Part shown: piece by piece, positions 4,063 through 58,254 of the stretch | Position numbering within the stretch: the first letter of the stretch is position 1 | Layout of the letters: every line of letters begins with the position of its first letter | DNA from: Penicillus capitatus | Lineage: Eukaryota; Plantae; Chlorophyta | Assembly (NCBI GenBank): GCA_965649825.1 | Contig: OZ287697.1 | Span: 1,908,351 to 1,972,350 of the forward strand | DNA length: 64,000 nucleotides | Direction of reading: 5' to 3' | Translations under genes and position numbers: made by a program | The notes under the pieces: generated by a model | What the model was told of the DNA's origin: nothing | The model's input: only the letters and a program-made list of their open reading frames with translations | The model's database searches: none

Positions 4063-7000
4063 ATGAGGAGTTCTTGTTCGCGACTCTTCTTTCTTTCTCT
4101 ACTGGCGGCTCTCTATGTGACTCCCTTTCGAGCCTATGAGCAGAGCACGTCCACGCGAGACAGGTCTCACCAAATAAGCACTTCTGCACCGTATCTAAGC
4201 ATAGGCTACGTGTGGACAGATTGTCCGTTTCCTTACCCTTGCCGACTGTCGACGCACGATGGGGTCTGCTGAAAACGCACGGTCAGATTCTGATCACTCT
4301 TGATACGGCATTCTACAGAGAGGCGGAGGACGAGTGAGTGAGAAAGAGTGAGAATATAGGGGACTCGATGTTGGGTGATGATGATGTAGCGTACTGTTGT
4401 GGATGCGGCGGAAAGGAGGCCGATTCCTGCACACCATTCCGAAAGCGTCTTTGCTTTTTCTCGCAGATCCGACTCTGATAGAAGCTGCCAAGAAGCTCCC
4501 ACACGTTCAGTCCGTGGTCCGATCAGCCCTCTCCTCTTGTGTATGACCTCACGGGTCCTGTCTTTTCAGTCGCTCTACGACACGGCCGCCAAAATAGCGA
4601 AGACATGGCAACCCGTGTTCGAAGCGCTGGAGAATCATCCCGTGGAGTTTCTGGCAATGACGCCTTTGCACGATCTCGCTCTTTCCGAAGGGCATCCGTT
4701 CTTAGGCCAACTCTTCATCGATCAAACAGGTCACCCATTCACAGGCGCTCTCTTCTCCAAGACTGTGCGACAGGATCCACCGATCGCCTTGTGATTGAAG
4801 TGGGTTTCCCTCTCCTCCACAAAACCGCCGTGGACAACGAGGACGAGAATTACCGTCCGGCTCAGGCTGCCGCGGCAGATTGGTTGATACCTTTGAGAGA
4901 GCGCTTTGGACGGGACATTGATATGGAGCCCTTTCACCGACTGGTCGACATCTACGCTCCTCCGTCCATCGTGCCAGATCTCTTGGCTTGGCTGTCGGAG
5001 CAGAGCGCCGTGCATTGGCTGCAGCCCAAGACACGTATGACGATACATAACTGGCGGGCCAGTGGGATCATTCAGTCCGGCATTGCCCCTACAGAAGAGT
5101 CTGCCGCCATCGATGACGCCATCCATCCCATCTGGGCGGCCGGGATCCAAGGAGAAGGCCAGATTGTCGGCTGCGGCGATTCCGGCGTCGATGTTGACAG
5201 TTGTTTCTTCTACGATCCAGATCTCTCGATCTCCGATAACATTGAGAATTCAGCAGAGGCGCCGACAAGGATAACGGTCTCACTCTTCTTCGACAACGAC
5301 AAGCATCGAAAAATCCGCTACTACGGAAGCGCCTCAGATTTTTCAGATGGCGATGGTCACGGAACGCATGTGGCCGGAACACTCGTGGGCAATCCTTACA
5401 AGTCCCGTGACACGATGGCCGTCGCCAATCGCGGTATGGCACCAGAAGCCCGACTGGCTTTTCTGGATCTAGGCAGAAATTCGGGCACCAATACGTCCGA
5501 TTCGATTTACACGCCACAAGAGCTCTCTACGTATTACTATCCCATTACGTACGATAAAGGTGTTCGGATTCATTCCGACTCGTGGGGATCAAGCACGGCC
5601 GAGTATGATCATCTGGCTCAAGAGGTGGACAAATTTGCGTATGATCATCCGGATTTTCTTCCGATCTTTGCGGCTGGGAACTACGGTCAGTTGTCGTTTC
5701 GATATCTGACCACTGTCACATCACCTGCCGTGGCGAAGAACTGTATTTCGGTGGGCGCCACCCTCACCTCCAATCAACCAAGTAGTTTTTCAAACGACGA
5801 TATCGAAGCCTACCTCATCCAGATTCGCATCTCGGTTGCAGAGAGTGCGTCACCTCTTCGTACGGCATTTGGATATGATGTGACAGGTGTTATGTACAGG
5901 CGATGACGAAATGCGACAGTACAAGATTCTGGCGGCTGGCTTTGGCAAGAGCTGGGGGCGCCTGATCGAACAGAGCGCAGAAGAAGAGATTCCGTTGATT
6001 CGTGGCACACCACAAGCGGGATGCAGTACACTGAGCAGTGCCGTACGTGGGAAGATCGTGCTCGTCAGCCGAGGCGGCTGTCAATTCGTGCAAAAACTCA
6101 AGAACGCACAAGCCAAAGGTGCCCTTGGCATCATCGTAGGGAATAACGCCAACAATGGCTACTTCGAAATGGACCGACCGGATGACACGCCAGACTCAGA
6201 ACTGACGATTCCCATTGCATCGGTGCCGTTGTCTGTCAGCCGACAGTTACTCGAAGTACTGGACGCCAAACGCCAGACGACGCTGCGTGTCATGGAGAGA
6301 ACGGTGCCGGCGAATGCCTACGACAACATTGCGGATTTTTCGTCCAGTGGACCGACGATCGATTACCGCATCAAACCCGACATCGTGGCACCGGGTCGCA
6401 TCACTTCTGTCTGGGGAGATGGGTCGAAGCACAATGCCCCTGGACAGTGTCTTCTCAAAACGAGCTCCGGAACGTCGATGGCGACACCTGTAGTGGCAGG
6501 AGCGGCTGTTCTTGTCCGGCAGTACTTTACAGACGGATTCTACCCATCAGGCAAAAAGAATCCGAAAAACGCCTACCAGCCATCGGCAGCATTGATCAAA
6601 GCGACGCTGCTAGGCGGGGCGTTTCCAATGGACGGTTACACGGAGGCAGGGCTGCCGTTAGAACCGCCGCCATCTCCGCGACAAGGTTTTGGACGGGTGT
6701 ATCTCGAGACGTCGATTCCGGTGGTCGGATCACAGAAATGGAAAGAGGGTTGGCGACTGCAGGTCATCGATCGGGCAAGTTTAGCAAGGGACGCGTCGCA
6801 CGAGTACTGTGTCAGTGCCTTGGGTGGACCCATCCGGATCACCCTCGTCTGGACCGATCCGCCTGCCCTTGTCCAAGCCAACAGCTTTCTTGTGAACGAT
6901 CTCGATCTGTCCGTCCGTTCGGCTGGCCTCAAAGGACGGGTCCTATTGGGAAACGGTGTGCAGGATCGGGTGAACAACGTCGAACGTGTGCACGTCGATG

Positions 7001-9992
7001 ACATGCCGAAAGGAAATCTGGCCATTGTTGTCGAAGCGGCCAATATTGCTTCGGCCTACCAAATACAGTCCTATGCCTTGGTCGTTCAGGGACACTTCAA
7101 TGGCATTCTGCAGAGCGCTTACAATCCGTATCAGTCAGAGACGCCATCGGCTGCAGAGATGTGCATCATCACGCTGGCCGAGCTCACATCGGGTCCAGAT
7201 GGACCCACAAACAGCAGCCGTCCAGAATTCACCTTTACGACGAAATCGGGCGTCCAGCCTGTCAATGGATTCGAATGCAAGCTGACAGATGCCGAAGGAG
7301 CAAAGGAAGGCGCAAACGCCGCACTGCATGACTGGAAAGAATGTTCCAGTCCGTGGAAATATAATGATCTTCCAGACATGGTACAGTCCCCTTTCCCCCC
7401 CTCCTTGGACAGAAACCATGTGTTGCAGGCGTATACCTTTACGGTGCGGCCGAAGAACGAAGACGTCGAAGAGAAGAGGGAATTCATTGTGGATACCGAA
7501 GCTCCGGTGACGTCGATCGAAGGGGATCCCATTGCCGAGACCTCGGCACAAGAAACCGTGCAGTTTCAGTTCTCTGCGACAGATCTGACGACCGTCACCT
7601 TTCATTGCAAGCTGACGCTGGATGGACCGCGGACAGATGTGCAGATCGCACGGGAGAAGACACAAGAGCGTGATCTTCGTCTGGATACATGGTTCCGTTG
7701 CACATCGCCCGAGATCTTTCATGGACTGACATATGGCAACTGGAAATTCAGCGTCAGGGCAAAGGACGAAGCAGGAAACGCAAACGTGAGATTGCTTTCT
7801 CGCAAGAGAGCAATCAGCGTTACGTAAACGGTCTGTTCTTTAGGAGGATGTCACATCACATTCATGGAAGATTGCGTTCTCGCCCGATCGTTATTATGTC
7901 CGAACGATCGATGCCCCACTGGCTGTCACATCATCTCCAAATGTCACTTTCGAGATGAGAGTCATGACAGGTAGCGGCGCTTCATGCTCATGCGATCTGT
8001 ACGACAACTGGATGCCTTGCAGGAGATATCGAAGGACTGCCGGTGGCTTTGGACGGCGAAGCGATCGAATGCCGTCTGTTGGCTGCAGATCAAGAAACTC
8101 CGTTCCGTAACTGCTCACGGACAACCAAAATGAACAGCAATCCAGACGGGCGCTTTACCTTCGAGGCACGGACACGGGATACAAAGGGACATGACTTGGA
8201 GGGGCGTCCGACCCATTCGCATACCATTGTTCATTTCTCCATCGACAGCACGGCGCCTGTCATCTCCTTCTTGGAGAGGCCGGACACCTATCATAGCGAT
8301 AGCGACGTGATGTTGCAGTTCGAATCGAACGAGAACGTTTCCAAATATGAATGCTCGATGACGCCACGTGCAGAGGACAAGAGATTCAATCAGTGCCCAG
8401 GAACGGATCCGGGAACCGTAGATTATCATCTGGACGACGGATGGTATACGTTTCAAGTCAGGGGCCAAGATCTTGCGGGAAACAACGGATACTCTGAAGA
8501 GATCACATTCAACATCGATTCTCTCCCACCACAAATCTGTAAGGCGATCGACCCAGGCGAAAATCTCCTGCTCAAATGCTGTCCCCTGTGTGCAGTGTTT
8601 TGGGCGCCAGCTCAGTTTGCCACCAACCAGAGGAATGTGTTCTTTGAGTTCGAGGTCAAGGACAAAGGATCCGGCGTTGTCACGGAGAACAACACCTGTT
8701 ACTTGCTTGATGAAAAGACAGGCGACCGGATAGTCTACCCGGCAGGAAACTGCACATCACCGATGGAGTTTGAATTGGAGGAGGGACGATATCTCTTCAC
8801 GTTTGTGGCGACCGACAGAGCAGGACAAATCGGCGAAAAGGTAGGTGGATGACCACAGTGCCCCCCCAGCGGAGACCCGTGTGTCTTGTTGGTAGGATCT
8901 GCCCATCATCGTCGACTTCACGCCGCCTTCGGTGACATGGAAGTCGACCCTGTCTACCAATGACGCTCTTCCGTCCTTTGTGGTGTTTCGGTTCGAAGGA
9001 TCGGACGAACCGAAAGACATTGCCTCGCTGGTCACCGCTTTTGAATGCAAACTGGATCGGCAAGATGGGGCTTCGACCGTGTCAGAAACCCAACCCGTCG
9101 AGTAAGGCATCATTCTGCCCATCTTGCTGAGAGAACAGATTGTCCCTCTCGTCTAGACTGGCTCCGAACGAAAGACGTCGGATGCTGCAGGTGAAGCAGC
9201 CTGTCACATCACGACATCTAACCGAAGGGAACGTCACATCAGCTGACGATCTCGATCACAAGCCGCGCACGATCCAAATCCGAGACGGCGCCGTCGTGGT
9301 GTTGGGTTCCTGGGTCGACTGTGAGGATCCCGTTATTCTAACGGGCATGTCCTCCGGGAGATACGCTTTCCGTGTCCGTGCCATCGACCACGCCGGCAAT
9401 ACAGGAAAACCGACAGATACGGTCCTCTTTACCGTAGACGATACGTTGCCCATTCCCGGCGAAGATGACGACGAAACATCGTCGTCGGACGTCGAGATCT
9501 CGCAATCTCTTTTGCTGGTCCTCTCGGGCGCCAGTCTGCTCTTCGTCTTGTGTATGTGTGTCGTCGTCGGGTGCTGGCGACAGCGATCGCGACGTCGCCG
9601 GATCGAGAAAGAGAACGCCAGAGCATCGGGCCTGGACAGAGAACCGTCCATCCCTCGTCATCTTCGCCAGCAGGAAATGACGGCGTCCACCACTTCTTCG
9701 GCAGATCCAATGCTGGCCGTTGCCATAAAAGTAGCGAGCGACCTCAAAAAAGACGAACGCATCTCTACTGCTATCCATCTAGGCATCTCTACAGGAACAG
9801 AGGAACGAGGAGGAGCAGCGTAGGCACGTGAATGAAGCCGTCGATGCTCAGAGAATGCAGATGGCCATGCAGCAGAGTCTGGAACAATATCAATACCAAA
9901 GCGCAGTGGAGAAATCTCTTTACGGTAGGCTCTTCGGCCAAAGACGCCTATCATTGCTCACTCGCTTGTCTTCTGTCTTGACAGATTCGTGA
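4063..9992 (+). CDS. Type-I membrane subtilase (S8, KP-43/TagC-like): signal peptide, PA domain, jelly-roll, Ig-like repeats, TM helix, cytosolic tail (multi-exon)
   Basis: Signal peptide MRSSCSRLFFLSLLAALYV; catalytic DSG, HGTHVAG, AAGN, SGTSMATP; PA domain GKIVLVSRGGCQF; D.AGN...D..PP repeats; TM LLLVLSGASLLFVLCMCVVVG; spliced tail ends YDS-TGA at 9992. Confidence 0.92.
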
Positions 9993-35403: not shown

Positions 35404-37656
35404 CTACAACAAATCAAATAGGTAACTTATTAGGGGCCCATTCAGGTGGAAGGCAAACGGAACAGACTCGAAAAGAGACTGTGTATGGTATGGCCCCATG
35501 CATAGGACTGGTAAGGTGATGGTACAGATAGTGACGACGACGACGACGGTTTCACGATAAAGGTGACCTCGAGAGATGGCGAAGCACTTGAGAGCGGCAC
35601 TGAAATGGATCGAGCATCGATGAAGGAGCAGTATTCGCCCTCCAATACACATTTGAGGGACATATCGTAGTTCTGATTCCAGTAATGCTGTGCATACGAG
35701 TAGACGATCACATCGTTCGTCTCCGTTCCCGTCGAGATCTGCCATTGGAAGTCCGTATCCGAACGGCACATTCCGCTCTTGGGCTTCTGTGCGCTTATTT
35801 TGAACAGAGATGCCTTGTTGAGTTGGATGCGCTCCCCTGGTCCAACAGAGATACTGCGCTCGGCATGATCGCCGCCACCTGCACGAGGCATCGGATCATC
35901 TCGGCGTTGGGCAAAGAGAGGGATATGCTCACCGCAGATCGCAAGTGCCACCTCAAGTGTGTTGTGTAGATAGACGTTCGATCCTTGCTTCTCGTGGGCC
36001 AGGCGACGCCCTCCTCCGTGCGTGAAATCCGGTTGGAAGGTCGTGGTGGTAGCGAAATCGGATCCACCGGTCGTTGCCGAACCAAAGGTATGTGTCGAGC
36101 TGGAGGCGCTGCTGGCCGAGGAGGTATGTGCACTTGAAAAGGCAGAACTCTGGGCATAGCTCTGAGAAGATCCTTGCGGTGCCGAGGAAACCATCGTCTG
36201 CGATGAGGAATGCGTCGTCGTCGTACTCTGCGATGAATACGACGTGTGCATTTTGAGTCCAGAGATCCACGAAATCTCTTGCAGATGATTACGATTCGGC
36301 GTCCTACACACATCCCGTGAACATCTGTTGCGCCGCCATAGACGCGCCGCCAAACGCACCTGTACATCTGCCCATACTTCGGCTTCGTGGCTGGCTTCTT
36401 GAAAACAAACTTAACTTGCGTCGATCCCGGTCGCTTTGGCTTCTTCAGCACGTCTGCCTTAACGACGTTGTGGTTTCGGAAGACTGGACCGCACACTCCG
36501 CTCTCCGAGGATGTGCTAGATGTGAGGGGTGCCATCAGGTGAGGAGGCAACGGAGATGGGGTGATTACCATTCGAGGTCCATTTGGTATCCGACGTATTC
36601 CTCCGGGATCTCGCTGTTGGGTTGTTGATAGAAGTAGTGTGTTGAGTAGACCACTCCGTTGTCTTCGACACCGGATCCGATCTCGTAGGGCAACAGGGAC
36701 GCTCCACTTGGACTGAACTCATCCCATGTACACGCTTCCATGATATCTGCCCCCGCAAAACTAACGTAGAAATCGCCGTGCGTCGGTGACTTGTAAGATG
36801 GCCCCGTCCAGTAACTGCGAGGCTGTGTCGTGATCATGACGCTCTCGCCAGGCCGCACCAACGTCGGGATCAAAAAGATCTCGTGTCCTACAAAGCACAC
36901 ACCCTCGCTGCCATGCCTCGGCGCTCCGTGGGGTTAGAAACCTGGAAAAACAGTTTGGCATAGGAAGACATGTGTGTCGAGCCGGTTCTCTGCGAAGACG
37001 TATGTCTCGCCCAGAGCACAGAGCGGTTTGTTCGGCAGATCCAATGTCCCATCTTCTTTGCAGAGGACGCCATGCGTCGACGTTCCATAGTTCCATGTTC
37101 CGTCGCAGTGTCCGCGTTGATGGGCATTGGCGTTGTCATAGTTTGAGGTTTCTTTTTGATTGAAGGTGGTCCAGTAGTAGCCGGGTTCACATGCATAGAG
37201 ACAGTGAACACCTGGCTTACATGCCTGCCCCTTAGGATCCAGTGCCCATCCCTTAGCAATGGTCGAGCCTCGTCGCGAACCGGGCAAGCATACGATGTTG
37301 TCTTGGTCTGGCAGGGGACAGACGGTGCCTCGATTGGCCCAACACTCTTGGAAACCGCGTCGTGGCCACGATTCGTCCGTACGTCCCCAGTACTTTTCCC
37401 ACCAGTCATGGTGATTCAACATGGTCTCTTGCGTGACCGTCTCGGGTGGCCCTTGAGGACAGCCAGAGTGAATGGCATCAAAGATAGATTTCAGTGAACG
37501 GCCTGTCCATGGGCTCCTCTCCACACGGCTCGCCTCTGCCCTCTGCAGCAACGGTATCTGATTCGCATCTGTGTCCGTTGAGGCAGGGCGACTTACTGAG
37601 AGTGTCAATGTCAAGAGCATCAAAACCATAGCGACTGTGTCGTGCCGTCGCACCAT
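35404..37656 (-). CDS. Secreted SUN-family (GH132-like) protein A with Ser/Thr linker and C-terminal extra domain (multi-exon; last exon uncertain)
   Basis: Signal peptide VLMLLTLTLSVSRPAS; CKPGVHCLYACEPG, HGVLC, VFLCQTVFPGHEIFLIPTLV, FYVSFAG..EAC, LPYEIGSG. Confidence 0.8.
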
Positions 37657-37771
37657 CTTGTTGTCTAGACTGTCCTGCAAATACATCATGCCTTGTAGCG
37701 GTCGGAGGAAGTGCGACTTTGTATTCGGTGGACGCTGAACAACGGTCGGCTCGCGACAAACTTCGCGTCTT

Positions 37772-38439
37772 TTATACAAGAGCTTTGTTTTTGTTATTTA
37801 TGAACGGTCGGGAGAGCGAGGAGAATGGCCACGGGAAATAGGTAGGCAAAGTGCAGGTCGACGGTGCACGGTGCGAAGAAGGCACGAATAACGAGGCTTG
37901 TGGGCGAGTGCTAACCTTAGTCAACCGCAAATGTGCAGCAAAGAACGCGGCGGACTTGACGCGATGGCAGATTTCGACGACCTCGTGCGGAAGATGCTCC
38001 GGCTTCTCTCGAGTCACAATGTGCAGAAACGATTCCGTCTGTGATCTCTTCACTTATCGACGGATAGCTCCAAAACAGCGCGCATTCAAAACGAGTTCAT
38101 CCTTGTCTTCTTGCCAACCGAAGCGCTTCAACGGTCCGGAGAATGAAATCCGCTGAGCTGAAGGGAAAAACGAGGCAGATGTGCTGCCTCGATGCCATGG
38201 CCGCGTCCATGTATAACGTCAAACAGACAGCAACGCATTGAAGCCAACAACGCGTACAGAGAAGAACAAGACACATCGAACCATATATATGACAGAAGTG
38301 TGCAGTGGGTCAGGCATATCATTCAACTGTTGTATGGTGGCAGCAAGAGGCACGTCCCATCAAACACGATCGTCTACAGATCCGATGTGTGACAAGTGTG
38401 ATCCAGGACCCTAGCTTCGCATCCAATCATCGCCGCCAT
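37772..38439 (-). CDS. Possible small hypothetical gene
   Basis: Exon-like pieces (LKRFGWQEDKDELVLNARCFGAI; KPEHLPHEVVEICHRVKSAAFFAAHLRLTK) with splice-like junctions; full model not resolved. Confidence 0.3.
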
Positions 38440-38511
38440 GCCTGTAAGCGAAACGATGTGTGAGGGGCGGCGTGGCTGCTGTTGGCATACCGCCCACCGC
38501 CGGTGTCTTTT

Positions 38512-38933
38512 CTACACCGATTCCTGCCATTTGTGTCCACAGGCCGTGCAGTTGAAGAAAAGCGTCATGCCATCTGGCGTGGTCGTTGAGAAATACACCG
38601 CCTCTGGGTGTTCACAGGCGGGACATCGGACATCTCGTGTCCTTGGCAGTGTCGGATCCGATCGGACATCACGCAGAATCGTTGTGCGTTCCTTCGCACT
38701 GTGCCGCATCTAACACAGCCGAACATCGAGCATCTCTCCTTGCGTCTCTCACTCGGACACACCTCGTTCACATAGACACAGTAAGACTCTTCCGGAATCT
38801 CCGCCTCGTAGCCACAGTTCTTGCATTTGTAGATGAGTTTCTTCTCCTGTGGGATCTCTTTGGGGTAGAGCAGGTCGTTTGTATGTGGACAGAACTTCAG
38901 AATCAGAGACCGTCGTTTCTTCGGAGAATCCAT
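38512..38933 (-). CDS. RPB9: RNA polymerase II subunit RPB9 (two exons)
   Basis: FCPHTNDLLYPKE..YKCKNCGY; DPTLPRT..CPACEHPEAVYF..LFFNCTACGHKW. Confidence 0.95.
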
Positions 38934-39141
38934 TCGAAACTCCCCGTACAACGGACGCTCTTTGCGATGATGCTCATCTTCCAGATGTATGGACATCGAC
39001 GATCGTCTCTGCGCCGCTCGTCTCGTCGTCGGTTACCATGCATCGTCGACAGAGAAGCAGCGCCGCTCGGATGCAGCGTACCTGACTTCCGAGGCGTGCG
39101 AATACGTCCACTTCTCTCATCCGAGCGTCAGGCGGTCCACC

Positions 39142-40849
39142 ATGCCGAACCCTCTCTTCACCACCATCCTGTTACTGGTTGGGCGTCCTCTTCTGGCAAT
39201 CGGCGTCTGATGGTATCGTGGCCCCTTGTAGGGATGCATCGTCGCGCATGCGAGTCGTAAGAGCTCTGCCGTGTCGAATTCGAAAACAGCAGGTCTGGAT
39301 GACGATTCTCCGTTTGGTCTCGACGTCGTGGCTCTCTAGGCGTCTGTCACAAAGGCATTCAACCTGTCGAAAGCACTGAAACGCAACTCAATCACCACGA
39401 TTACTGGCTGACGACATTGGGAAGGACGGGAAGTGGATGGCCTAAGCGTGGCATGCCGTCCTGCTGGGCCAATCGTGGCGCCGTTTGTGCCTTGCCAGAC
39501 GAAGACCACGTCGTCTGTCTTCCCGGTTCGCGTCGGGGTTCAACAGTGAACAGAGGATGGGCACTCGATCCACGCTCGCAGTCCTGTCAACCCGGCGTGC
39601 ATTGCCTCTACGCCTGCGAACCGGGATACTACGCCACACAGTTCAACCCTGACGAGGCCTCGAGTTTCGACAAAGAGCACGCTTCGAAAAAAGGAAACTG
39701 TGATGGATCGTGGGACTACGGCACATCGACCCACGGGATGTACTGCGACGAGAGCGGTATTCTCCAGAAGCCGTATCCAGGGCCCCTATGCAAGCTTGGA
39801 GAGACATATGTCTACGTGGAGAATCGACTGGATACTCATGTGTTTCTCTGCCAGACGGTGTTCCCTGGACACGAGATCTTTATGATCCCGACGCTTGTCC
39901 TGCCGGGAGAGAAGGTGATGCTGACCACGCAGCCACGGTCATACTGGAGTGGGCCGTCGTCGTCCAGACCGGTACATGCAGACTTCTATGTGAGCTTTGC
40001 CGGGGCGGACATTATGGAAGCGTGCACGCCTGACGAATTCAGTCCCAGTGGCGCGGCGCTGTTGCCGTATGAAATCGGATCGGGTATTGAAGACAATGGC
40101 GTCGTGTATTCGACGCATTACTTCTACCAACAGCCGAACAGCGAAGTGCCGACGGAGAGCGTTGGATATGAACTCGATCTGGAATGCGTCTCACGGGAAA
40201 ACGAGTTCTGTGGTGAAATGGTGCGTTCAGGGGCACTTGTCAAACTCGATGTCTACAAGAGACCACGCCACGACACCAGCAGAGTGTCGTTCATCCTGAA
40301 CAAACCAAAGAAGAAAGGCACATCCGCCTTCTACAAGTGCACAATTCTGCGAGGCTTGGCGACGAGATGTCGAGGGATGGATGATGGTGTCTAGAGAGCC
40401 GGTTGCGAAATCGTTAGATCCGGTGACGCTCGAGAGCTCCGTCAACGTGGCGCTGCTCGCGAACGTAGGTGGCAGAAGACGTCTCCTTGCGGAAGCGCTG
40501 CCTGGATCTGCCTCTGTTCGGAACACATTGGACAGCGCTGTTCGAATCTGCGAAGAAGGTAGGCAGGCACCCTTATGTCGATGGGATACGCATACATCCA
40601 CTGCTGCTTGCTCCAGAACCGAACGGAAAGCTTCGTGCGTATCTTCTCTCACCGGGAGAGGTGTTCGATATCGAAGGCAAGAAGACGCTCTTTGTCGGCC
40701 AAGAGGCGATGTCATGCACTGGCGGCGCCGAGATGCCGTGGAAGATCTGGACGAAGATGCCGGTGGCCAATGGTGAGCAGTATGGCTATGCTCTCTCTAA
40801 GCTCCCCATTTCGCATCCTCTCGCATACGGACTCATGATCCACTGGTGA
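39142..40849 (+). CDS. Secreted SUN-family (GH132-like) protein B with C-terminal extra domain (multi-exon)
   Basis: Spliced signal peptide MPNPLFTTILLLGCIVAHA; CQPGVHCLYACEPG..TQF, HGMYC, LCKLG, VFLCQTVFPGHEIFMIPTLV, HADFYVSFAG, LPYEIGSG. Confidence 0.82.
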
Positions 40850-41399
40850 GCACACCATCCGGTTTCCTGTTGTGTGACGCGGACGTGTGGCAGTGCCTCG
40901 GAGACACAGGGGTGTCGAACGAACGATGCATCGACCGTCGAAGTCGATCGTTCAGCGATGACAGATCCCACTCTGCAGGTGACATTCGTGATCCGAGCCT
41001 TCCCGACGCGTGCGGCGCCGCCATCCGATGCACGGCGTCCGCAGTCGATATGGTGGAGGCGAAATGATGATCTGGTTAAGTGGTAAGGTGTATGTTGTAC
41101 ATAGCGCTGTGATCTCTCAGCTGTTTTTACGGTGAGACGCGTCCACATTGGCATGGACTATGGTCATCGAGTTGCGTTCTAGGGTTCGTTAAGACTGTCG
41201 CCCGTTTCTTATGGATCGAGGATGAGGAAGGATCTTTCTGCTGGGATTTTGGAAATCTACAATGTGGTCATTTGGAGAACTGTACAGAGAACTGGGACAC
41301 AAAGCTGACAAGGGGGAGGGGGGTATTGTGAGATGGACTGTGTGATGTGACATGACTTTGTGATACCGTCTCGTCCCGCTTTACATTCGCGTCGCCTTC

Positions 41400-55703: not shown

Positions 55704-58254
55704 ATGGAGGTCATCGAAATCGATGACGATACAGAGTCGGAGGGGAGCGACGAAGTGATGTATGTGAGAGAGCTTTCGGACCCGCTGCCGAAACCACGCA
55801 TCAGAAACATTCTCCCTTCGACAATAATGTCGCCACCAGACGGACCTCGGATACCATTCGCAACGCCCAATTGGAGCAAAAGACAATTGCCCGACGATAA
55901 GCTGTCGAGAGGCGAACAGATTCTAAAGAGATTTCGCCGTGAGAACGAGGACACGAAGCTGCCTTCACCACAAGAGAAAAGCAAGCGTTTGTATTGCCGC
56001 AAAGATGCTGTACAGCTGGGCGAACATTCCGTAGGGGAAAGCAACGATGCGCGTCCTGTACAGGGCGCTTTGGAAATGCTTGACACAGAGGCAACAGAGG
56101 AAATGGATGTTCCCCCTGTTAGCGCTCTCTTGCTCGACCTGTTTTGTCAAAGTCGATTTCTAGGGGACATTGTGTGTGTCGCTAATGCTGCATCAGCGGT
56201 TGGCACTGTGTTGGATGGTTAAGCGCGAAAGAGGGGGGCATGATGTGTGTGGAGGAATCTTGGCAGACGATCAGGGACTGGGAAAGACAATCACTGCTCT
56301 GGCCCTCGTGCTCACGAACAAATCTCGCGGCGCATTCGACGACAATGATGCAGAGATCTGTATCTGCGAGGAGGTAGACGAGGCGTTGATGCAGAAATGG
56401 CATGGAGGTACACTGATTGTCTGCCCTGCTTCCGTGCTGCAGCAATGGAGAGCAGAAATCTGTAGCAAAGTGCATGCATTCGCAAGAGTATCCGTCTTCG
56501 TCCATCATGGCAAGGTATCACCTCATCTTTCCATACTACAACTGTCGGACAAGAGCATACCTTAGGAAAAGGCAAAGAAAGCTGAAGCTCTCACTCAGGA
56601 CACAGTGGTACTGACGACATATGCATCGTTGAGTCGAGAGACGATGAAAGTGCCGGATCACTCCAAGAAGGGCAACAAGAGTCGAAGGGTGTGTTCTCTG
56701 TGCAGTGGATCGCATTTTGAGAGCTGCTGTTGTGTTTGTTAGGTTTGTCGTGGCCCGCTGTACGATGTGCATTGGCTTCGTGTGATACTGGACGAATCTC
56801 ACTGCATCAAGAATCGTGAAACGGCATGCTCTCAGGCAGCCGTTGCCCTTTCGGCAGATTATCGCTGGTGTATGAGTGGGACACCCATTCAGAATTCCAT
56901 CGATGATCTCTTTCCCCTCTTCAAGTTCCTCCGATATCACCAATATTCGAGTTACTCACAGTTCGACTCCATCAGCCGCGCCTACAAACTCGGCAGGGCA
57001 TCTGGCGTCCGACGTCTCCGTGAGGCATTGAGCGGCGTGATGTTGAGAAGGACGAAACACTGTACCATACATGGAGTGCCGATCATACAGCTGCCGGAAA
57101 AGAGAGTGTCTCTGGTGAAAGCGGAAATGTCAGCAAAGGAGCGCGAAATGTACAAAGCCGTCGAAGTCGGAACGTACAAGACGTACAGCAAGATGCAAAA
57201 CCAGCAGGGAAACAGCTATTTTAACTATCTCGTCATGATCCTCCGCTTACGCCAAGCTTCATCCCATCCATGGTTGCTGGAAGGCACAGACCAGACGAAG
57301 CATCCAGGCACGCACTTCACAGAGATTTCGCGTTATGACGATGTGTTTGGCGCAGAAGTGACAGAGGAACAGCTCGAAGCTGCGAGAGCACTGTCGCCGG
57401 AGGAGAGACAGCTGTTTTTGCAGAAGGTGTCGACATCGCAAGATGTTTGCCCCTTCTGTGGAGATGTTCCAGAGCTTCCTGTTGTCAGTTATTGCGGCCA
57501 CGTCTTCTGCCATCAGTGTTTTTCGCTGGAAGCGGAGAAAGGCTTAGATCCAGACAACGCAGATGCTGGCTGTCCGCATTGCCAGCAGAAACTACACACC
57601 CATCGCTGCTTCACGCAACACTCCCTTCGCGCCGTTTCCGACGAACTCGCCGCGACAGGCATGCTGCCAGATGAGAAACCATGGGAATCCAGTGCCAAAG
57701 TTGACAAGCTGTTAGAGGTCTTAGAAAACATACAGGGCGATCAAATGTTGGTGGATGGCGAAGAACAGGAGGGCAGTCAGGACAAGGTCCTCGTCTTCTC
57801 CCAGTGGACGAGTATGTTAGACATTATCGAGATTCCCTTAGAGCAGCGAGGATTCCGTGTTCTCCGATTGGATGGGACAATGAGTCTCAGCACCAGATCC
57901 GCCGTCCTTGAAGAGTTCGAATCCGATCCAACGGTCTCCGTTCTTCTTATGTCTCTACGGGCAACATCGATGGGCATCAATCTGACCTGTGCTAATCATG
58001 TCATCTTGCTGGATCTGTGGTGGAATCCTTCTGTCGAGGAACAGGCCATTGATCGCGTTCACAGGATCGGGCAACACAAGACGGTCTTTGTCACGCGTAT
58101 CACGATCAAAGACACAGTGGACGAAAGAGTCTTGCAGTTGCAGCAGAAAAAGCGGGATCTTGTCGAAATGGCTGTCCGTTCTAAACGCGACGTCTGTGTT
58201 TCTGGGCAGTTGACGATGGACGACATTCACTTCTTGTTTGACGGCCTTAGATAA
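55704..58254 (+). CDS. SNF2-family helicase with RING finger (RAD5/RAD16/ULS1-like; multi-exon)
   Basis: GGILADDQGLGKT, GTLIVCPAS, VILDESH, MSGTPIQN, RING CPFC..CGHVFCHQC..CPHC, KVLVFSQWTSMLD, WWNPSVEEQAIDRVHRIGQ; N-terminal VIEIDDD. Confidence 0.95.

Follow-up and report, generated by a model that had tools for sequence, protein, structure and literature searches.

An undescribed pair of SUN-family (GH132) genes in the nuclear genome of a siphonous green alga

Two functional paralogues in the nuclear genome of a siphonous green alga from the order Bryopsidales, here called gene A and gene B, encode undescribed members of the SUN (GH132) family, which was termed fungal-specific in a 2026 structural paper (PMC13251364). 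They are almost certainly native SUN-family genes and lie in divergent orientation around an RPB9 gene in the window, the whole 64,000-nucleotide stretch of DNA analysed. The best overall explanation, which we consider likely, is that they encode native secreted SUN-family cell-wall proteins whose groove would bind a β-1,3-linked wall polymer. The initial annotation had proposed an algal GH132 branch that was so far unnoticed; consistent with this, no paper tying GH132 or PF03856 to siphonous green algae was found in the literature searched.

The proposed SUN/GH132 homology was confirmed by a profile search, in which the two proteins scored 106 and 110 bits (E ~1e-30) against Pfam SUN (PF03856; cut-off 25 bits). 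In the PDB, Sun4/Sim1 were matched by phmmer at E 1e-13; a profile match reached E 9e-105. An AlphaFold model of the gene B SUN domain (pLDDT 83, pTM 0.85) retrieved the Sun4/Sim1 crystal structures 9T4Q, 9T4N, 9T4O and 9T47 as its top four Foldseek matches (E 1e-17), with TM scores of 0.61-0.69 against 9T4Q/9T47, followed by the thaumatin-like TLXI (E 6.6e-4) and then other thaumatin-like proteins. All six motifs listed initially were present in both predicted proteins in identical order, and the yeast motifs quoted alongside them proved essentially correct. The two algal proteins were 54% identical overall and ~70% identical within the SUN domain, far above chance, and each carried a Cys-rich N-terminal extension.

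The gene models are summarized in Table 1. The introns of gene A measured 54, 53 and 56 nt, all with GT-AG borders, and the model was collinear with the Caulerpa lentillifera proteins P0002 and P0004. Its SUN domain was interrupted by introns 1-3, the third of which splits residue 397. The gene B SUN domain was contained within exon 2 (39462-40336) except for its last codon, which crosses the 58-nt intron 2 to 40395; the introns between the listed gene B exons measured 58, 58 and 48 nt, and the donor of intron 2 occupied the same position as that of gene A intron 3. The locus had been delimited as 35404-40849, but gene B ends at 41086 and 35404 lies slightly outside gene A, whose stop codon occupies 35442-35444. 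The segments 'MIHW' (gene B) and 'MDLEW' (gene A) turned out to be read-through into introns. For the RPB9 gene, an in-frame ATG upstream at 38996 offers an alternative start.

Table 1 Features of the locus, with positions counted from the start of the window
Feature	Position	Strand	Details
Gene A, SUN-domain protein, 683 aa	35442..37656	-	single open frame after splicing, stop included
Gene A exons (n=4)	37656-36942, 36887-36569, 36515-36360, 36303-35442	-	
Gene A signal peptide, ~25 aa, MVRRHDTVAMVLMLLTLTLSVSRPA	37582..37656	-	by inspection: charged n-region, then 14-residue hydrophobic core
Gene A SUN domain, aa 105-397	36303..37344	-	sushi-like and thaumatin-like lobes; Pfam PF03856 E 3e-30
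Gene A Ser/Thr-rich linker, aa 398-493	36015..36302	-	Ser+Thr 46% (computed composition)
Gene A C-terminal domain, aa 494-683	35445..36014	-	probable degenerate duplicate of thaumatin-like lobe
RPB9-family small RNA polymerase subunit gene	38512..38933 (about)	-	two exons, one 54-nt intron; between genes A and B
Gene B candidate first exon	39142..39207	+	ATG at 39142 and signal-peptide-like hydrophobic MPNPLFTTILLLVGRPLLAIGV
Gene B, SUN-domain protein, ~527 aa beyond first exon	39340..41086	+	spliced model; stop TAA at 41084
Gene B exons after first	39340-40336, 40395-40558, 40617-40845, 40894-41086	+	
Gene B SUN domain, aa 42-333	39462..40395	+	Pfam PF03856 E 2e-31
Gene B C-terminal domain, aa 358-527	40468..41083	+	homologous to gene A C-terminal domain (alignment, hhalign)

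The description of intron-containing divergent paralogues around RPB9 was upheld, whereas the signal peptides assigned to both differed in clarity. By inspection, the N-terminus of gene A (MVRRHDTVAMVLMLLTLTLSVS) has the appearance of a typical signal peptide. Gene B probably carries one as well, but its join to the rest of the gene is uncertain: the candidate first exon ends at a donor at 39185 or 39203, no canonical intron of the usual size was found to connect it with exon 2, and splicing in frame is possible only through a 155-nt GT-AG intron (donor 39185) or a 137-nt GC-AG one (donor 39203). The hydrophobic stretch was partly conserved in a related contig (L001), with frame-shifting indels just downstream, and in the homologue P0013 the signal peptide runs straight into the 'CPQG' segment.

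Both proteins contained a C-terminal domain that had been overlooked; that of gene A gave no Pfam match. In a single profile-profile comparison of shallow alignments (Neff 2.6), six such domains were aligned by hhalign with six SUN thaumatin-like lobes over 134 columns (probability 86.8%, E 4.3e-6), suggesting that the domain is probably a degenerate second copy of this lobe. The C-terminal architecture was variable among paralogues of the family.

The locus had the properties of a resident part of the algal genome. It was collinear over 6.4 kb with an independent 4.08-Mb contig at 86% nucleotide identity with the SUN-RPB9-SUN order kept, and this order recurred in a 0.5-Mb contig. Introns diverged much faster than exons relative to L001: gene A exons were 80-94% identical and its introns 45-65% with indels, while in gene B the exon 3 substitutions were synonymous and an 8-nt indel fell inside intron 2. 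The intron sizes of both genes (48-58 nt) matched that of the RPB9 intron, and the intron after 'CQTVFPG' was common to five other Bryopsidales genomic fragments. The spliced RPB9 product matched Pfam Zn_ribbon_RPB9 (E 2.5e-7) and Zn_ribbon_TFIIS (E 1.1e-9), and like the neighbouring subtilase, MutY and SNF2-RING helicase it found its best matches among green-lineage proteins. The GC content was uniform along the window at ~52.5%, nearer to that of Ostreobium (52.4%) than of Caulerpa (40.4%). Furthermore, three paralogues were present in the Caulerpa lentillifera proteome, and homologues also occurred on full-length intron-less contigs resembling transcripts. The dN/dS values of the SUN domains (0.035 in gene A, 0.12 in gene B) indicated purifying selection; the C-terminal domains evolved faster (0.50 and 0.37, respectively).

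By sequence, the algal genes fall in a SUN-domain branch that is not fungal. A neighbour-joining (NJ) tree separated fungal-type from non-fungal-type sequences with 99% bootstrap support, the other deep nodes being weak and NJ trees prone to long-branch artefacts, and the algal clade was nested in no fungal clade but grouped with oomycete, Bacteroidota and taxon-less sequences; the SUN family is therefore not fungus-specific. The initial statement that the family is described in Ascomycota was too narrow, as members from Zoopagomycota and Mucoromycota had already been reported. The nearest relatives were a Bacteroidota protein (44% identity), a protein of Aphanomyces astaci and a taxon-less protein; the last comes from a dense contig, free of introns and bearing dNK and YqaJ genes, which may be viral.

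Horizontal acquisition, also suggested initially, was neither confirmed nor refuted. It is possible, and we put it forward tentatively, that the Bryopsidales ancestor gained the genes from a group II-like fungal, oomycete, bacterial or viral donor, with duplication later. In a complete HMMER scan of 1.84 billion representatives, the family was found within green plants only in Bryopsidales-type sequences, and its very patchy spread is compatible with an old transfer, or with old inheritance and loss. Nevertheless, the algal clade sat inside no donor clade, and neither donor nor direction could be named; identity to any outsider did not exceed 45%, and the genes had host-type introns, some common to paralogues and species. 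Since most of the 150 representatives had no taxon, other algae may carry the family too.

Among named sequences, the best matches of the algal proteins were group II SUN proteins (Adg3-like; Ascomycota and Zoopagomycota, e.g. Smittium and Conidiobolus), at 35-45% identity. Both have the motif CQTV.PG.E with Val278, and in gene A, as in group II, a Ser/Thr-rich region comes after the SUN domain; a C-terminal Ser/Thr-rich region is the hallmark of group II (PMC13251364). Unlike group II, the algal proteins carried Asp at position 318 (His/Gln in group II), lacked the near-universal Gly-Asn-Trp motif (Asn343, Trp344), and had a remnant of a second thaumatin-like lobe instead of a C-terminal transmembrane segment; the 99% NJ split also set them apart from group II. 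With Saccharomyces cerevisiae Sun4/Sim1 (group I; PDB 9T47, 9T4Q) they shared the Pfam family, the predicted two-lobed fold and the ten-cysteine scaffold (10/10 Sun4 cysteines had positional counterparts) at about 22-25% identity. The algal SUN domain, however, is placed close to the N-terminus, with no Ser/Thr-rich region ahead of it as in Sun4/Sim1, has 18 additional residues, including one more Cys, inserted in the sushi-like lobe, is followed by the additional C-terminal domain and is less acidic (pI 5.4-6.2 versus 4.05 for Sun4).

Mapping onto ScSun4 showed that, among the 12 groove residues whose function has been tested in Sun4, only 5 were kept in gene A and 4 in gene B. Thr277, Glu283 and Trp310 were retained, as was Trp334 in gene A; the changes comprised Asp278Val, Tyr279Phe, Gln318Asp, Asn343Ser/Ala, Trp344Leu, Arg232Thr and Asn367Pro. 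The initial reading of a retained Glu in PG.E and a Val in place of the Asp was accurate, but Val278 is no algal peculiarity: it occurred in 54 of 98 non-algal sequences, is what SUN domains of group II and of Zoopagomycota normally carry, and does not reflect the loss of a catalytic residue in the algae. Given these substitutions, the ligand or binding mode is expected to differ from that of yeast Sun4. With so few groove residues kept, and with Gln318Glu non-functional in yeast Sun4 (PMC13251364), binding of a β-1,3-glycan is not assured. In yeast, Sun4 could not be replaced by group II domains (PMC13251364).

The wall-polymer-binding mechanism, drawn by analogy with Sun4, has in our judgement an even chance of being correct. 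We infer that proteins A and B would be secreted to the cell wall via their signal peptides, that the inter-lobe groove would bind a helical β-1,3-linked polymer, with fibrillar β-1,3-xylan or callose-type β-1,3-glucan as candidates, and that the bound protein would take part in wall remodelling. Its role could be scaffolding or recruitment, with exo-hydrolase or transferase activity weak at most. β-1,3-Xylan forms triple helices, as β-1,3-glucan does, and its binding by the algal proteins is a reasonable idea. The main fibrillar polymer of Bryopsidales is β-1,3-xylan or β-1,4-mannan (PMC7550628). Aspergillus fumigatus Sun1 and Candida albicans Sun41, the founding GH132 members with biochemical characterization, are secreted to the wall and act on β-1,3-glucan; AfSun1 has weak exo-glucanase activity and Sun41 is described as needed for proper wall structure. 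Both are group I proteins of Ascomycota, and their groove residues differ from the algal ones.

The original label 'glucanase' is not warranted, and it is unlikely that the proteins are active GH132 β-1,3-glucanases (or β-1,3-xylanases) cutting the wall polymer. Glu283 and Asp318, each invariant in the 17 algal sequences, would put two carboxylates at the groove floor; however, glucanase activity could not be measured for ScSun4 or ScSim1, structures at 1.1 Å allowed no active site to be assigned, GH132 is without defined catalytic residues, and Asp278 is missing as in all group II proteins. We consider it improbable that the proteins function in defence or the wound response instead of in building the wall, as secreted binders of the β-glucan of fungal or oomycete invaders or of wound-plug polysaccharide, modelled on plant thaumatin-like PR-5 proteins. 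The thaumatin-like lobe, the several paralogues with fast-evolving and variable C-terminal domains, and a groove unlike the fungal 'self-wall' type would fit such a role, but the SUN domain is under strong purifying rather than diversifying selection. The resemblance to thaumatin-like proteins (e.g. TLXI, PDB 3G7M) was confined to the fold of the C-terminal SUN lobe (10% identity, no Pfam thaumatin match), and thaumatin-like proteins lack the sushi-like partner lobe; a thaumatin-like relation of one lobe was likewise reported for Sun4.

Finally, a chimeric contig or contamination by DNA of fungi or oomycetes, suggested by the overwhelmingly fungal occurrence of the family elsewhere, is effectively refuted, as initially expected, by the repeated gene order in an independent 4-Mb and a 0.5-Mb contig, the Caulerpa paralogues, the green-lineage neighbours, the uniform GC, the host-type introns of the RPB9 size class and a best fungal identity of only about 35-37%.

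Six-frame translation and ORF listing of the 34.8-41.4 kb region of the window revealed two coding regions related to each other, gene A on one strand and gene B on the other, flanking a small zinc-ribbon gene. Spliced models of both, listed below, were guided by the closest database proteins and by alignment to L001, a related contig of 4.08 Mb. Gene A contained three introns of 54, 53, and 56 nt, all GT-AG, and encoded a product of 683 aa, while the introns of gene B measured 58, 58, and 48 nt. The two proteins were 54% identical overall and carried, in the same order, the six motifs by which the initial annotation had recognized a SUN/GH132-like pair. That annotation had placed the end of gene B at 40849 instead of its real end at 41086, and the final W of the peptides MDLEW and MIHW came from read-through into an intron.

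Positions of the SUN-domain genes and other features in the window
Feature	Position	Strand	Description
Gene A	exons 37656-36942, 36887-36569, 36515-36360, 36303-35442	minus	spliced model
Gene B	exons 39340-40336, 40395-40558, 40617-40845, 40894-41086	plus	spliced model
Gene B upstream ATG exon	39142	plus	product signal-peptide-like, MPNPLFTTILLLVGRPLLAIGV
RPB9-type gene between A and B	~38933-38512	minus	Pfam Zn_ribbon_RPB9 and TFIIS zinc ribbon; one 54-nt intron
Octamer GGCGTCTG, two copies (window 39196-39347)	39201-39208 and 39338-39345		both ends of the putative first intron of gene B
Intron after CQTVFPG in gene A	36888-36941		phase 1
Subtilase gene	4539-8852		Peptidase_S8 with inserted PA domain, then ORF with bacterial Ig-like (Big_13) match
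SNF2-RING helicase gene	56767-58254		16 kb downstream of gene B

Signal peptides had been proposed for both products. That of gene A was typical by inspection, whereas in gene B a signal-peptide-like exon was present with an uncertain splice join. The first splice junction of gene B is ambiguous because the octamer lies at both ends of the intron. No canonical GT-AG intron of 50-60 nt shared by both species was found in the first-exon region, which contained frame-shifting indels in the related contig, and for a conserved GT after codon 12 no in-frame acceptor was found in the window. The only two in-frame joins used a 155-nt GT-AG or a 137-nt GC-AG intron, and only the GC-AG intron kept the full signal peptide.

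Membership of both genes in the SUN family was strongly supported. Against Pfam SUN (PF03856, the same family as IPR005556 and CAZy GH132), gene A scored 105.9 bits (E 3e-30) and gene B 109.7 bits (E 2e-31), above the curated cut-off of 25 bits. Saccharomyces cerevisiae Sun4 and Sim1 were the only matches of a phmmer search against PDB sequences (E 1e-13), and a 63-sequence profile matched them with an E-value of 9e-105. An AlphaFold model of the gene B SUN domain was poor when built from a 14-sequence alignment (pLDDT 52) and was not used; with 63 aligned sequences, a pLDDT of 83 and a pTM of 0.85 were reached. The resulting model predicts a two-lobed fold with a sushi-like N-terminal lobe and a thaumatin-like lobe. 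Its four best Foldseek matches in the PDB were the Sun4/Sim1 structures 9T4Q, 9T4N, 9T4O, and 9T47 (E 3e-17 to 1e-16, TM 0.61-0.69), in agreement with the kinship to Sun4 first read from motifs, followed by the thaumatin-like TLXI. A relation of this kind to thaumatin-like proteins is also described in the Sun4 structure paper (PMC13251364).

The family is further defined by a Cx5Cx3Cx24-27C motif and the five disulfides of Sun4. The algal proteins retained Cx5Cx3C and had positional counterparts for all ten Sun4 cysteines. Cysteine spacings were 5, 3, 42, 13-14, 19, 57, 53, and 7 in the algal proteins and 5, 3, 24, 15, 19, 56, 58, and 13 in Sun4; the fourth cysteine at x42 resulted from an 18-residue insertion in the sushi-like lobe that brought an extra cysteine at x27. 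Further cysteines occurred in the N-terminal extension of the algal proteins.

Phylogenetically, the genes fell into neither of the two fungal groups. Group I proteins (Sun4/Uth1/Sim1/Nca3) carry CRTDYPGTE with Gln318 (Sun4 numbering) and no C-terminal Ser/Thr-rich region, whereas the algal motif is CQTVFPGHE with Asp318, and the algal sequences lay outside the group I clade (100% bootstrap). A C-terminal Ser/Thr-rich region is a hallmark of group II SUN proteins (PMC13251364), and the linker after the SUN domain of gene A (96 residues) was composed of 46% Ser+Thr. The gene B linker, in contrast, spanned 24 residues and was not Ser/Thr-rich, and the algal sequences also fell outside the group II clade in a neighbor-joining (NJ) tree, which is a distance method only. 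Behind the linker, both genes encoded a C-terminal domain of ~170-190 residues, also present in Caulerpa proteins, for which no Pfam match was found in gene A or gene B. A profile-profile comparison aligned this domain with the SUN thaumatin-like lobe over 134 columns (probability 86.8%, E 4.3e-6), and the CQTV.PG.E motif was absent from it. With moderate confidence, it may be a degenerate internal duplicate of the thaumatin-like lobe. Three homologues (P0005, P0006, and P0008) had a Pro/Gln-rich tail in its place.

Several lines of evidence indicated that these are real, native algal genes. The locus was collinear with L001 over 6.4 kb at 86% nucleotide identity, which amounted to 78-94% in predicted exons and 45-72% in predicted introns, the latter containing indels that were not multiples of three. 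Nei-Gojobori estimates against L001 gave dN/dS values of 0.035 (gene A) and 0.12 (gene B) for the SUN domain and 0.37-0.50 for the C-terminal domain. These values show purifying selection on both genes. Homologues were also found in sequencing-run assemblies as full-length, intron-less contigs of ~2 kb, which look like transcripts. The closest named proteins were three from Caulerpa lentillifera in EukProt (64-69% identity, 536-554 aa), the nearest Caulerpa protein reaching only 68% identity.

Contamination was excluded because of gene order, neighboring genes, GC content, and introns, as the initial annotation had expected from the flanking genes. The order SUN-RPB9-SUN was found again on two contigs, the one of 4.08 Mb and, in another assembly, one of 0.51 Mb. 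Other genes of the window were ordinary eukaryotic nuclear ones, including a subtilase with a PA domain, MutY, an F-box/LRR protein, and the SNF2-RING helicase, whose best matches were on the same 4-Mb contig (81%), in a EukProt protein, in a Trebouxia protein, and in land-plant CHR28. GC content was even along the window at ~52.5%, compared with published values of 52.4% for Ostreobium quekettii and 40.4% for Caulerpa lentillifera. Together with the 68% protein identity, this points to a member of Bryopsidales distinct from Caulerpa and possibly similar to Ostreobium; should the source be Ostreobium or a relative, the SUN family would be older than the deepest split in Bryopsidales. The introns of the SUN genes belonged to one size class with that of RPB9. 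The intron after CQTVFPG was present in gene A and in five further genomic fragments from Bryopsidales, as judged from read-through ends (P0013, P0015, P0167, P0168, and P0169). Together with the Caulerpa homologues, this evidence likewise excludes a recent acquisition. Gene B lacked the CQTVFPG intron, its coding sequence being continuous there, and either lost it or arose via a processed copy of that part; the donor of its intron 2 fell in the same codon as that of gene A intron 3.

To place the genes among their relatives, a full HMMER scan was required, since word-indexed searches with one protein or with an 8-sequence alignment returned Bryopsidales-type proteins only. Among 1.84 billion cluster representatives, HMMER detected 204 proteins at E<=1e-3. 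Identities were at least 64% within the Bryopsidales-type group, with nothing further until 36-45%. Named neighbors included Zoopagomycota (Smittium, Zancudomyces, Furculomyces, Conidiobolus, and Neoconidiobolus) and the oomycete Aphanomyces astaci. By motif, nearly all other representatives were of group I (CRTDYPGTE, Gln318) or group II (CQTV[LY]PGNE, His318). The best match outside the algal group was P0025, a 709-aa Bacteroidota-type protein (contig L004:5146-7275) comprising CBM96, SUN, and F5/8 type C domains and a type IX secretion sorting tail; its contig was bacterial, operon-like, and from a marine biofilm metagenome. This bacterial SUN domain showed 44% identity to gene B, above any fungal protein.

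NJ trees of 115 domains and 191 columns, which are distance-based and in which most representatives carry no taxon label, recovered the algal clade as monophyletic (100% bootstrap) with P0026 as its sister (64-72%). A split with 99% bootstrap separated the fungal-type sequences (groups I and II and Zoopagomycota) from the algal clade plus six sequences not of fungal type, the latter side holding algal, oomycete-type, and bacterial sequences and others without a taxon label. A recent capture from an ascomycete is rejected because of this separation from all fungal-type sequences, and the horizontal acquisition suggested earlier is not established. The ancestor of Bryopsidales may have received its SUN gene either by an old transfer or by inheritance. 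Judged from these sequences, the SUN family is not fungus-specific, contrary to the newest structural study, which presents SUN/GH132 as a fungus-specific invention and an antifungal target (PMC13251364).

Some of the non-fungal sequences deserve separate mention. P0026 (L003:939-1943), the outgroup closest to the algal SUN clade, had a second representative of its type in P0127. The contig L003 (SRR24310118; 1-7727, 7.7 kb, GC 53-60%) was dense and intron-less and carried, along with several orphan ORFs, genes for an LRR protein, a deoxynucleoside kinase, and a YqaJ-like recombinase; it could be bacterial or belong to a large DNA virus. No relatives were found in GTDB genomes and IMG/VR when these were scanned with the algal alignment, P0026, and the L003 YqaJ gene. 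The A. astaci proteins P0111/P0174 (XP_009820906/XP_009820905) and two further sequences formed an oomycete-type clade (100% NJ bootstrap; locus L007:4086-6098) with the motif CQTVYPGNEAP and a partly absent Gly-Asn-Trp motif. P0123 (498 aa) was Asn/Lys-rich, with a C-terminal transmembrane segment and a very divergent SUN-like domain without the PG.E motif; its composition suggests an AT-rich protist.

Twelve groove residues of Sun4 have been tested in vivo (PMC13251364), and they were mapped onto the algal proteins through a 116-sequence alignment with 17 algal and 98 non-algal sequences.

State of Sun4 groove residues in the alignment
Sun4 residue	Algal sequences	Non-algal sequences
Thr277	Thr in 16/17	
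Glu283	Glu in 17/17	
Trp310	Trp in 17/17	
Trp334	Trp in 13/17; gene A Trp, gene B Pro	
Asp278	Val in 16/17	Val in 54/98
Tyr279	Phe in all	
Gln318	Asp in all	Gln or His in 96/98
Asn343-Trp344	Ser/Ala-Leu/Met in 16/17	Asn 88/98, Trp 83/98

Genes A and B kept T277, E283, and W310, with W334 in gene A only and a conservative Y279F, and were changed by D278V, Q318D, D230N/S, R232T, N343S/A, W344L, and N367P. The 12-residue conserved polar groove of ScSun4 is not preserved in the algal proteins. The Asp-to-Val change noted at the outset was correctly observed; as an algal loss it does not hold, since Val278 is a group II character that is usual in the proteins of this group and of Zoopagomycota. Those at 279, 318, and 343-344, in contrast, are specific to the algal clade. 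In yeast Sun4, Gln318Glu is non-functional (PMC13251364). The groove is thus rebuilt on a strongly conserved scaffold. The algal SUN domain was also less acidic (pI 5.4-6.2 vs 4.05 for Sun4).

With respect to function, beta-1,3-xylan adopts a triple-helical form, as does beta-1,3-glucan. Bryopsidales walls consist of beta-1,3-xylan or beta-1,4-mannan and contain little cellulose (PMC7550628). ScSun4 and ScSim1 were inactive on laminarin, with binding only in the millimolar range, so the label of glucanase is not justified. Given this wall chemistry and the Sun4 data, the most economical mechanism, with about an even chance of being right, would be a secreted wall protein whose groove holds a helical polymer with beta-1,3 linkages, either xylan or a callose-type glucan, and which, so bound, takes part in wall remodeling, its polymer specificity being changed relative to fungi. 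The main functional rivals are a true hydrolase activity, for which the family offers the weak activity reported for AfSun1 against none for ScSun4 and ScSim1, and a role in defence or wound response. A broader scenario, which we regard as unlikely, goes beyond polymer binding: the Bryopsidales SUN proteins would be the first known wall-remodeling module specific for triple-helical beta-1,3-xylan, with a groove adapted to xylose (Asp318, Phe279, and loss of Asn343-Trp344), and the SUN fold would have spread across kingdoms (fungi, oomycetes, marine Bacteroidota, and siphonous algae), perhaps via a large DNA virus, wherever helical beta-1,3-linked polymers are handled.

Within the literature searched, no paper linking GH132 or PF03856 to Bryopsidales or other green algae was found, apparent matches proving to concern GH13_25 or GH133, while GH132 in Zoopagomycota was already known (PMC8778642; PMC13251364). 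The sequence observation behind the initial annotation is confirmed, with the enzymatic label and the transfer claim not established, and the locus represents an undescribed non-fungal form of a known family, distinguished by its rebuilt binding groove and by an extra domain. Since Pfam auto-annotation already labels such proteins, what is new is their recognition and interpretation rather than the fold. That siphonous green algae maintain several conserved SUN genes under selection, and that an oomycete and a marine bacterium have related ones, changes the evolutionary story of SUN/GH132. It also offers a natural experiment in which one fold has a differently lined groove and faces walls of beta-1,3-xylan or mannan, not of beta-1,3-glucan and chitin. 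Wall-remodeling proteins are almost unstudied in Bryopsidales, organisms that remain a single giant cell during both growth and healing. Genes A and B provide definite candidates, open to binding assays and to the RNAi method that has become available in Bryopsis (PMC12961179).

Three minor observations were made. The Fig. 2 legend of PMC13251364 gives a disulfide C275-C322, which is probably a typographical slip, as residue 322 of the deposited 9T47 chain is Asn and the Cys is 332. The subtilase and the Big_13 ORF behind it are probably one multi-exon secreted protease. The second-best match of the SNF2-RING helicase was EukProt g198.t1, and one Caulerpa SUN paralogue is EukProt g196.t1; if g198.t1 is also from Caulerpa, the SUN-helicase neighborhood would be conserved.
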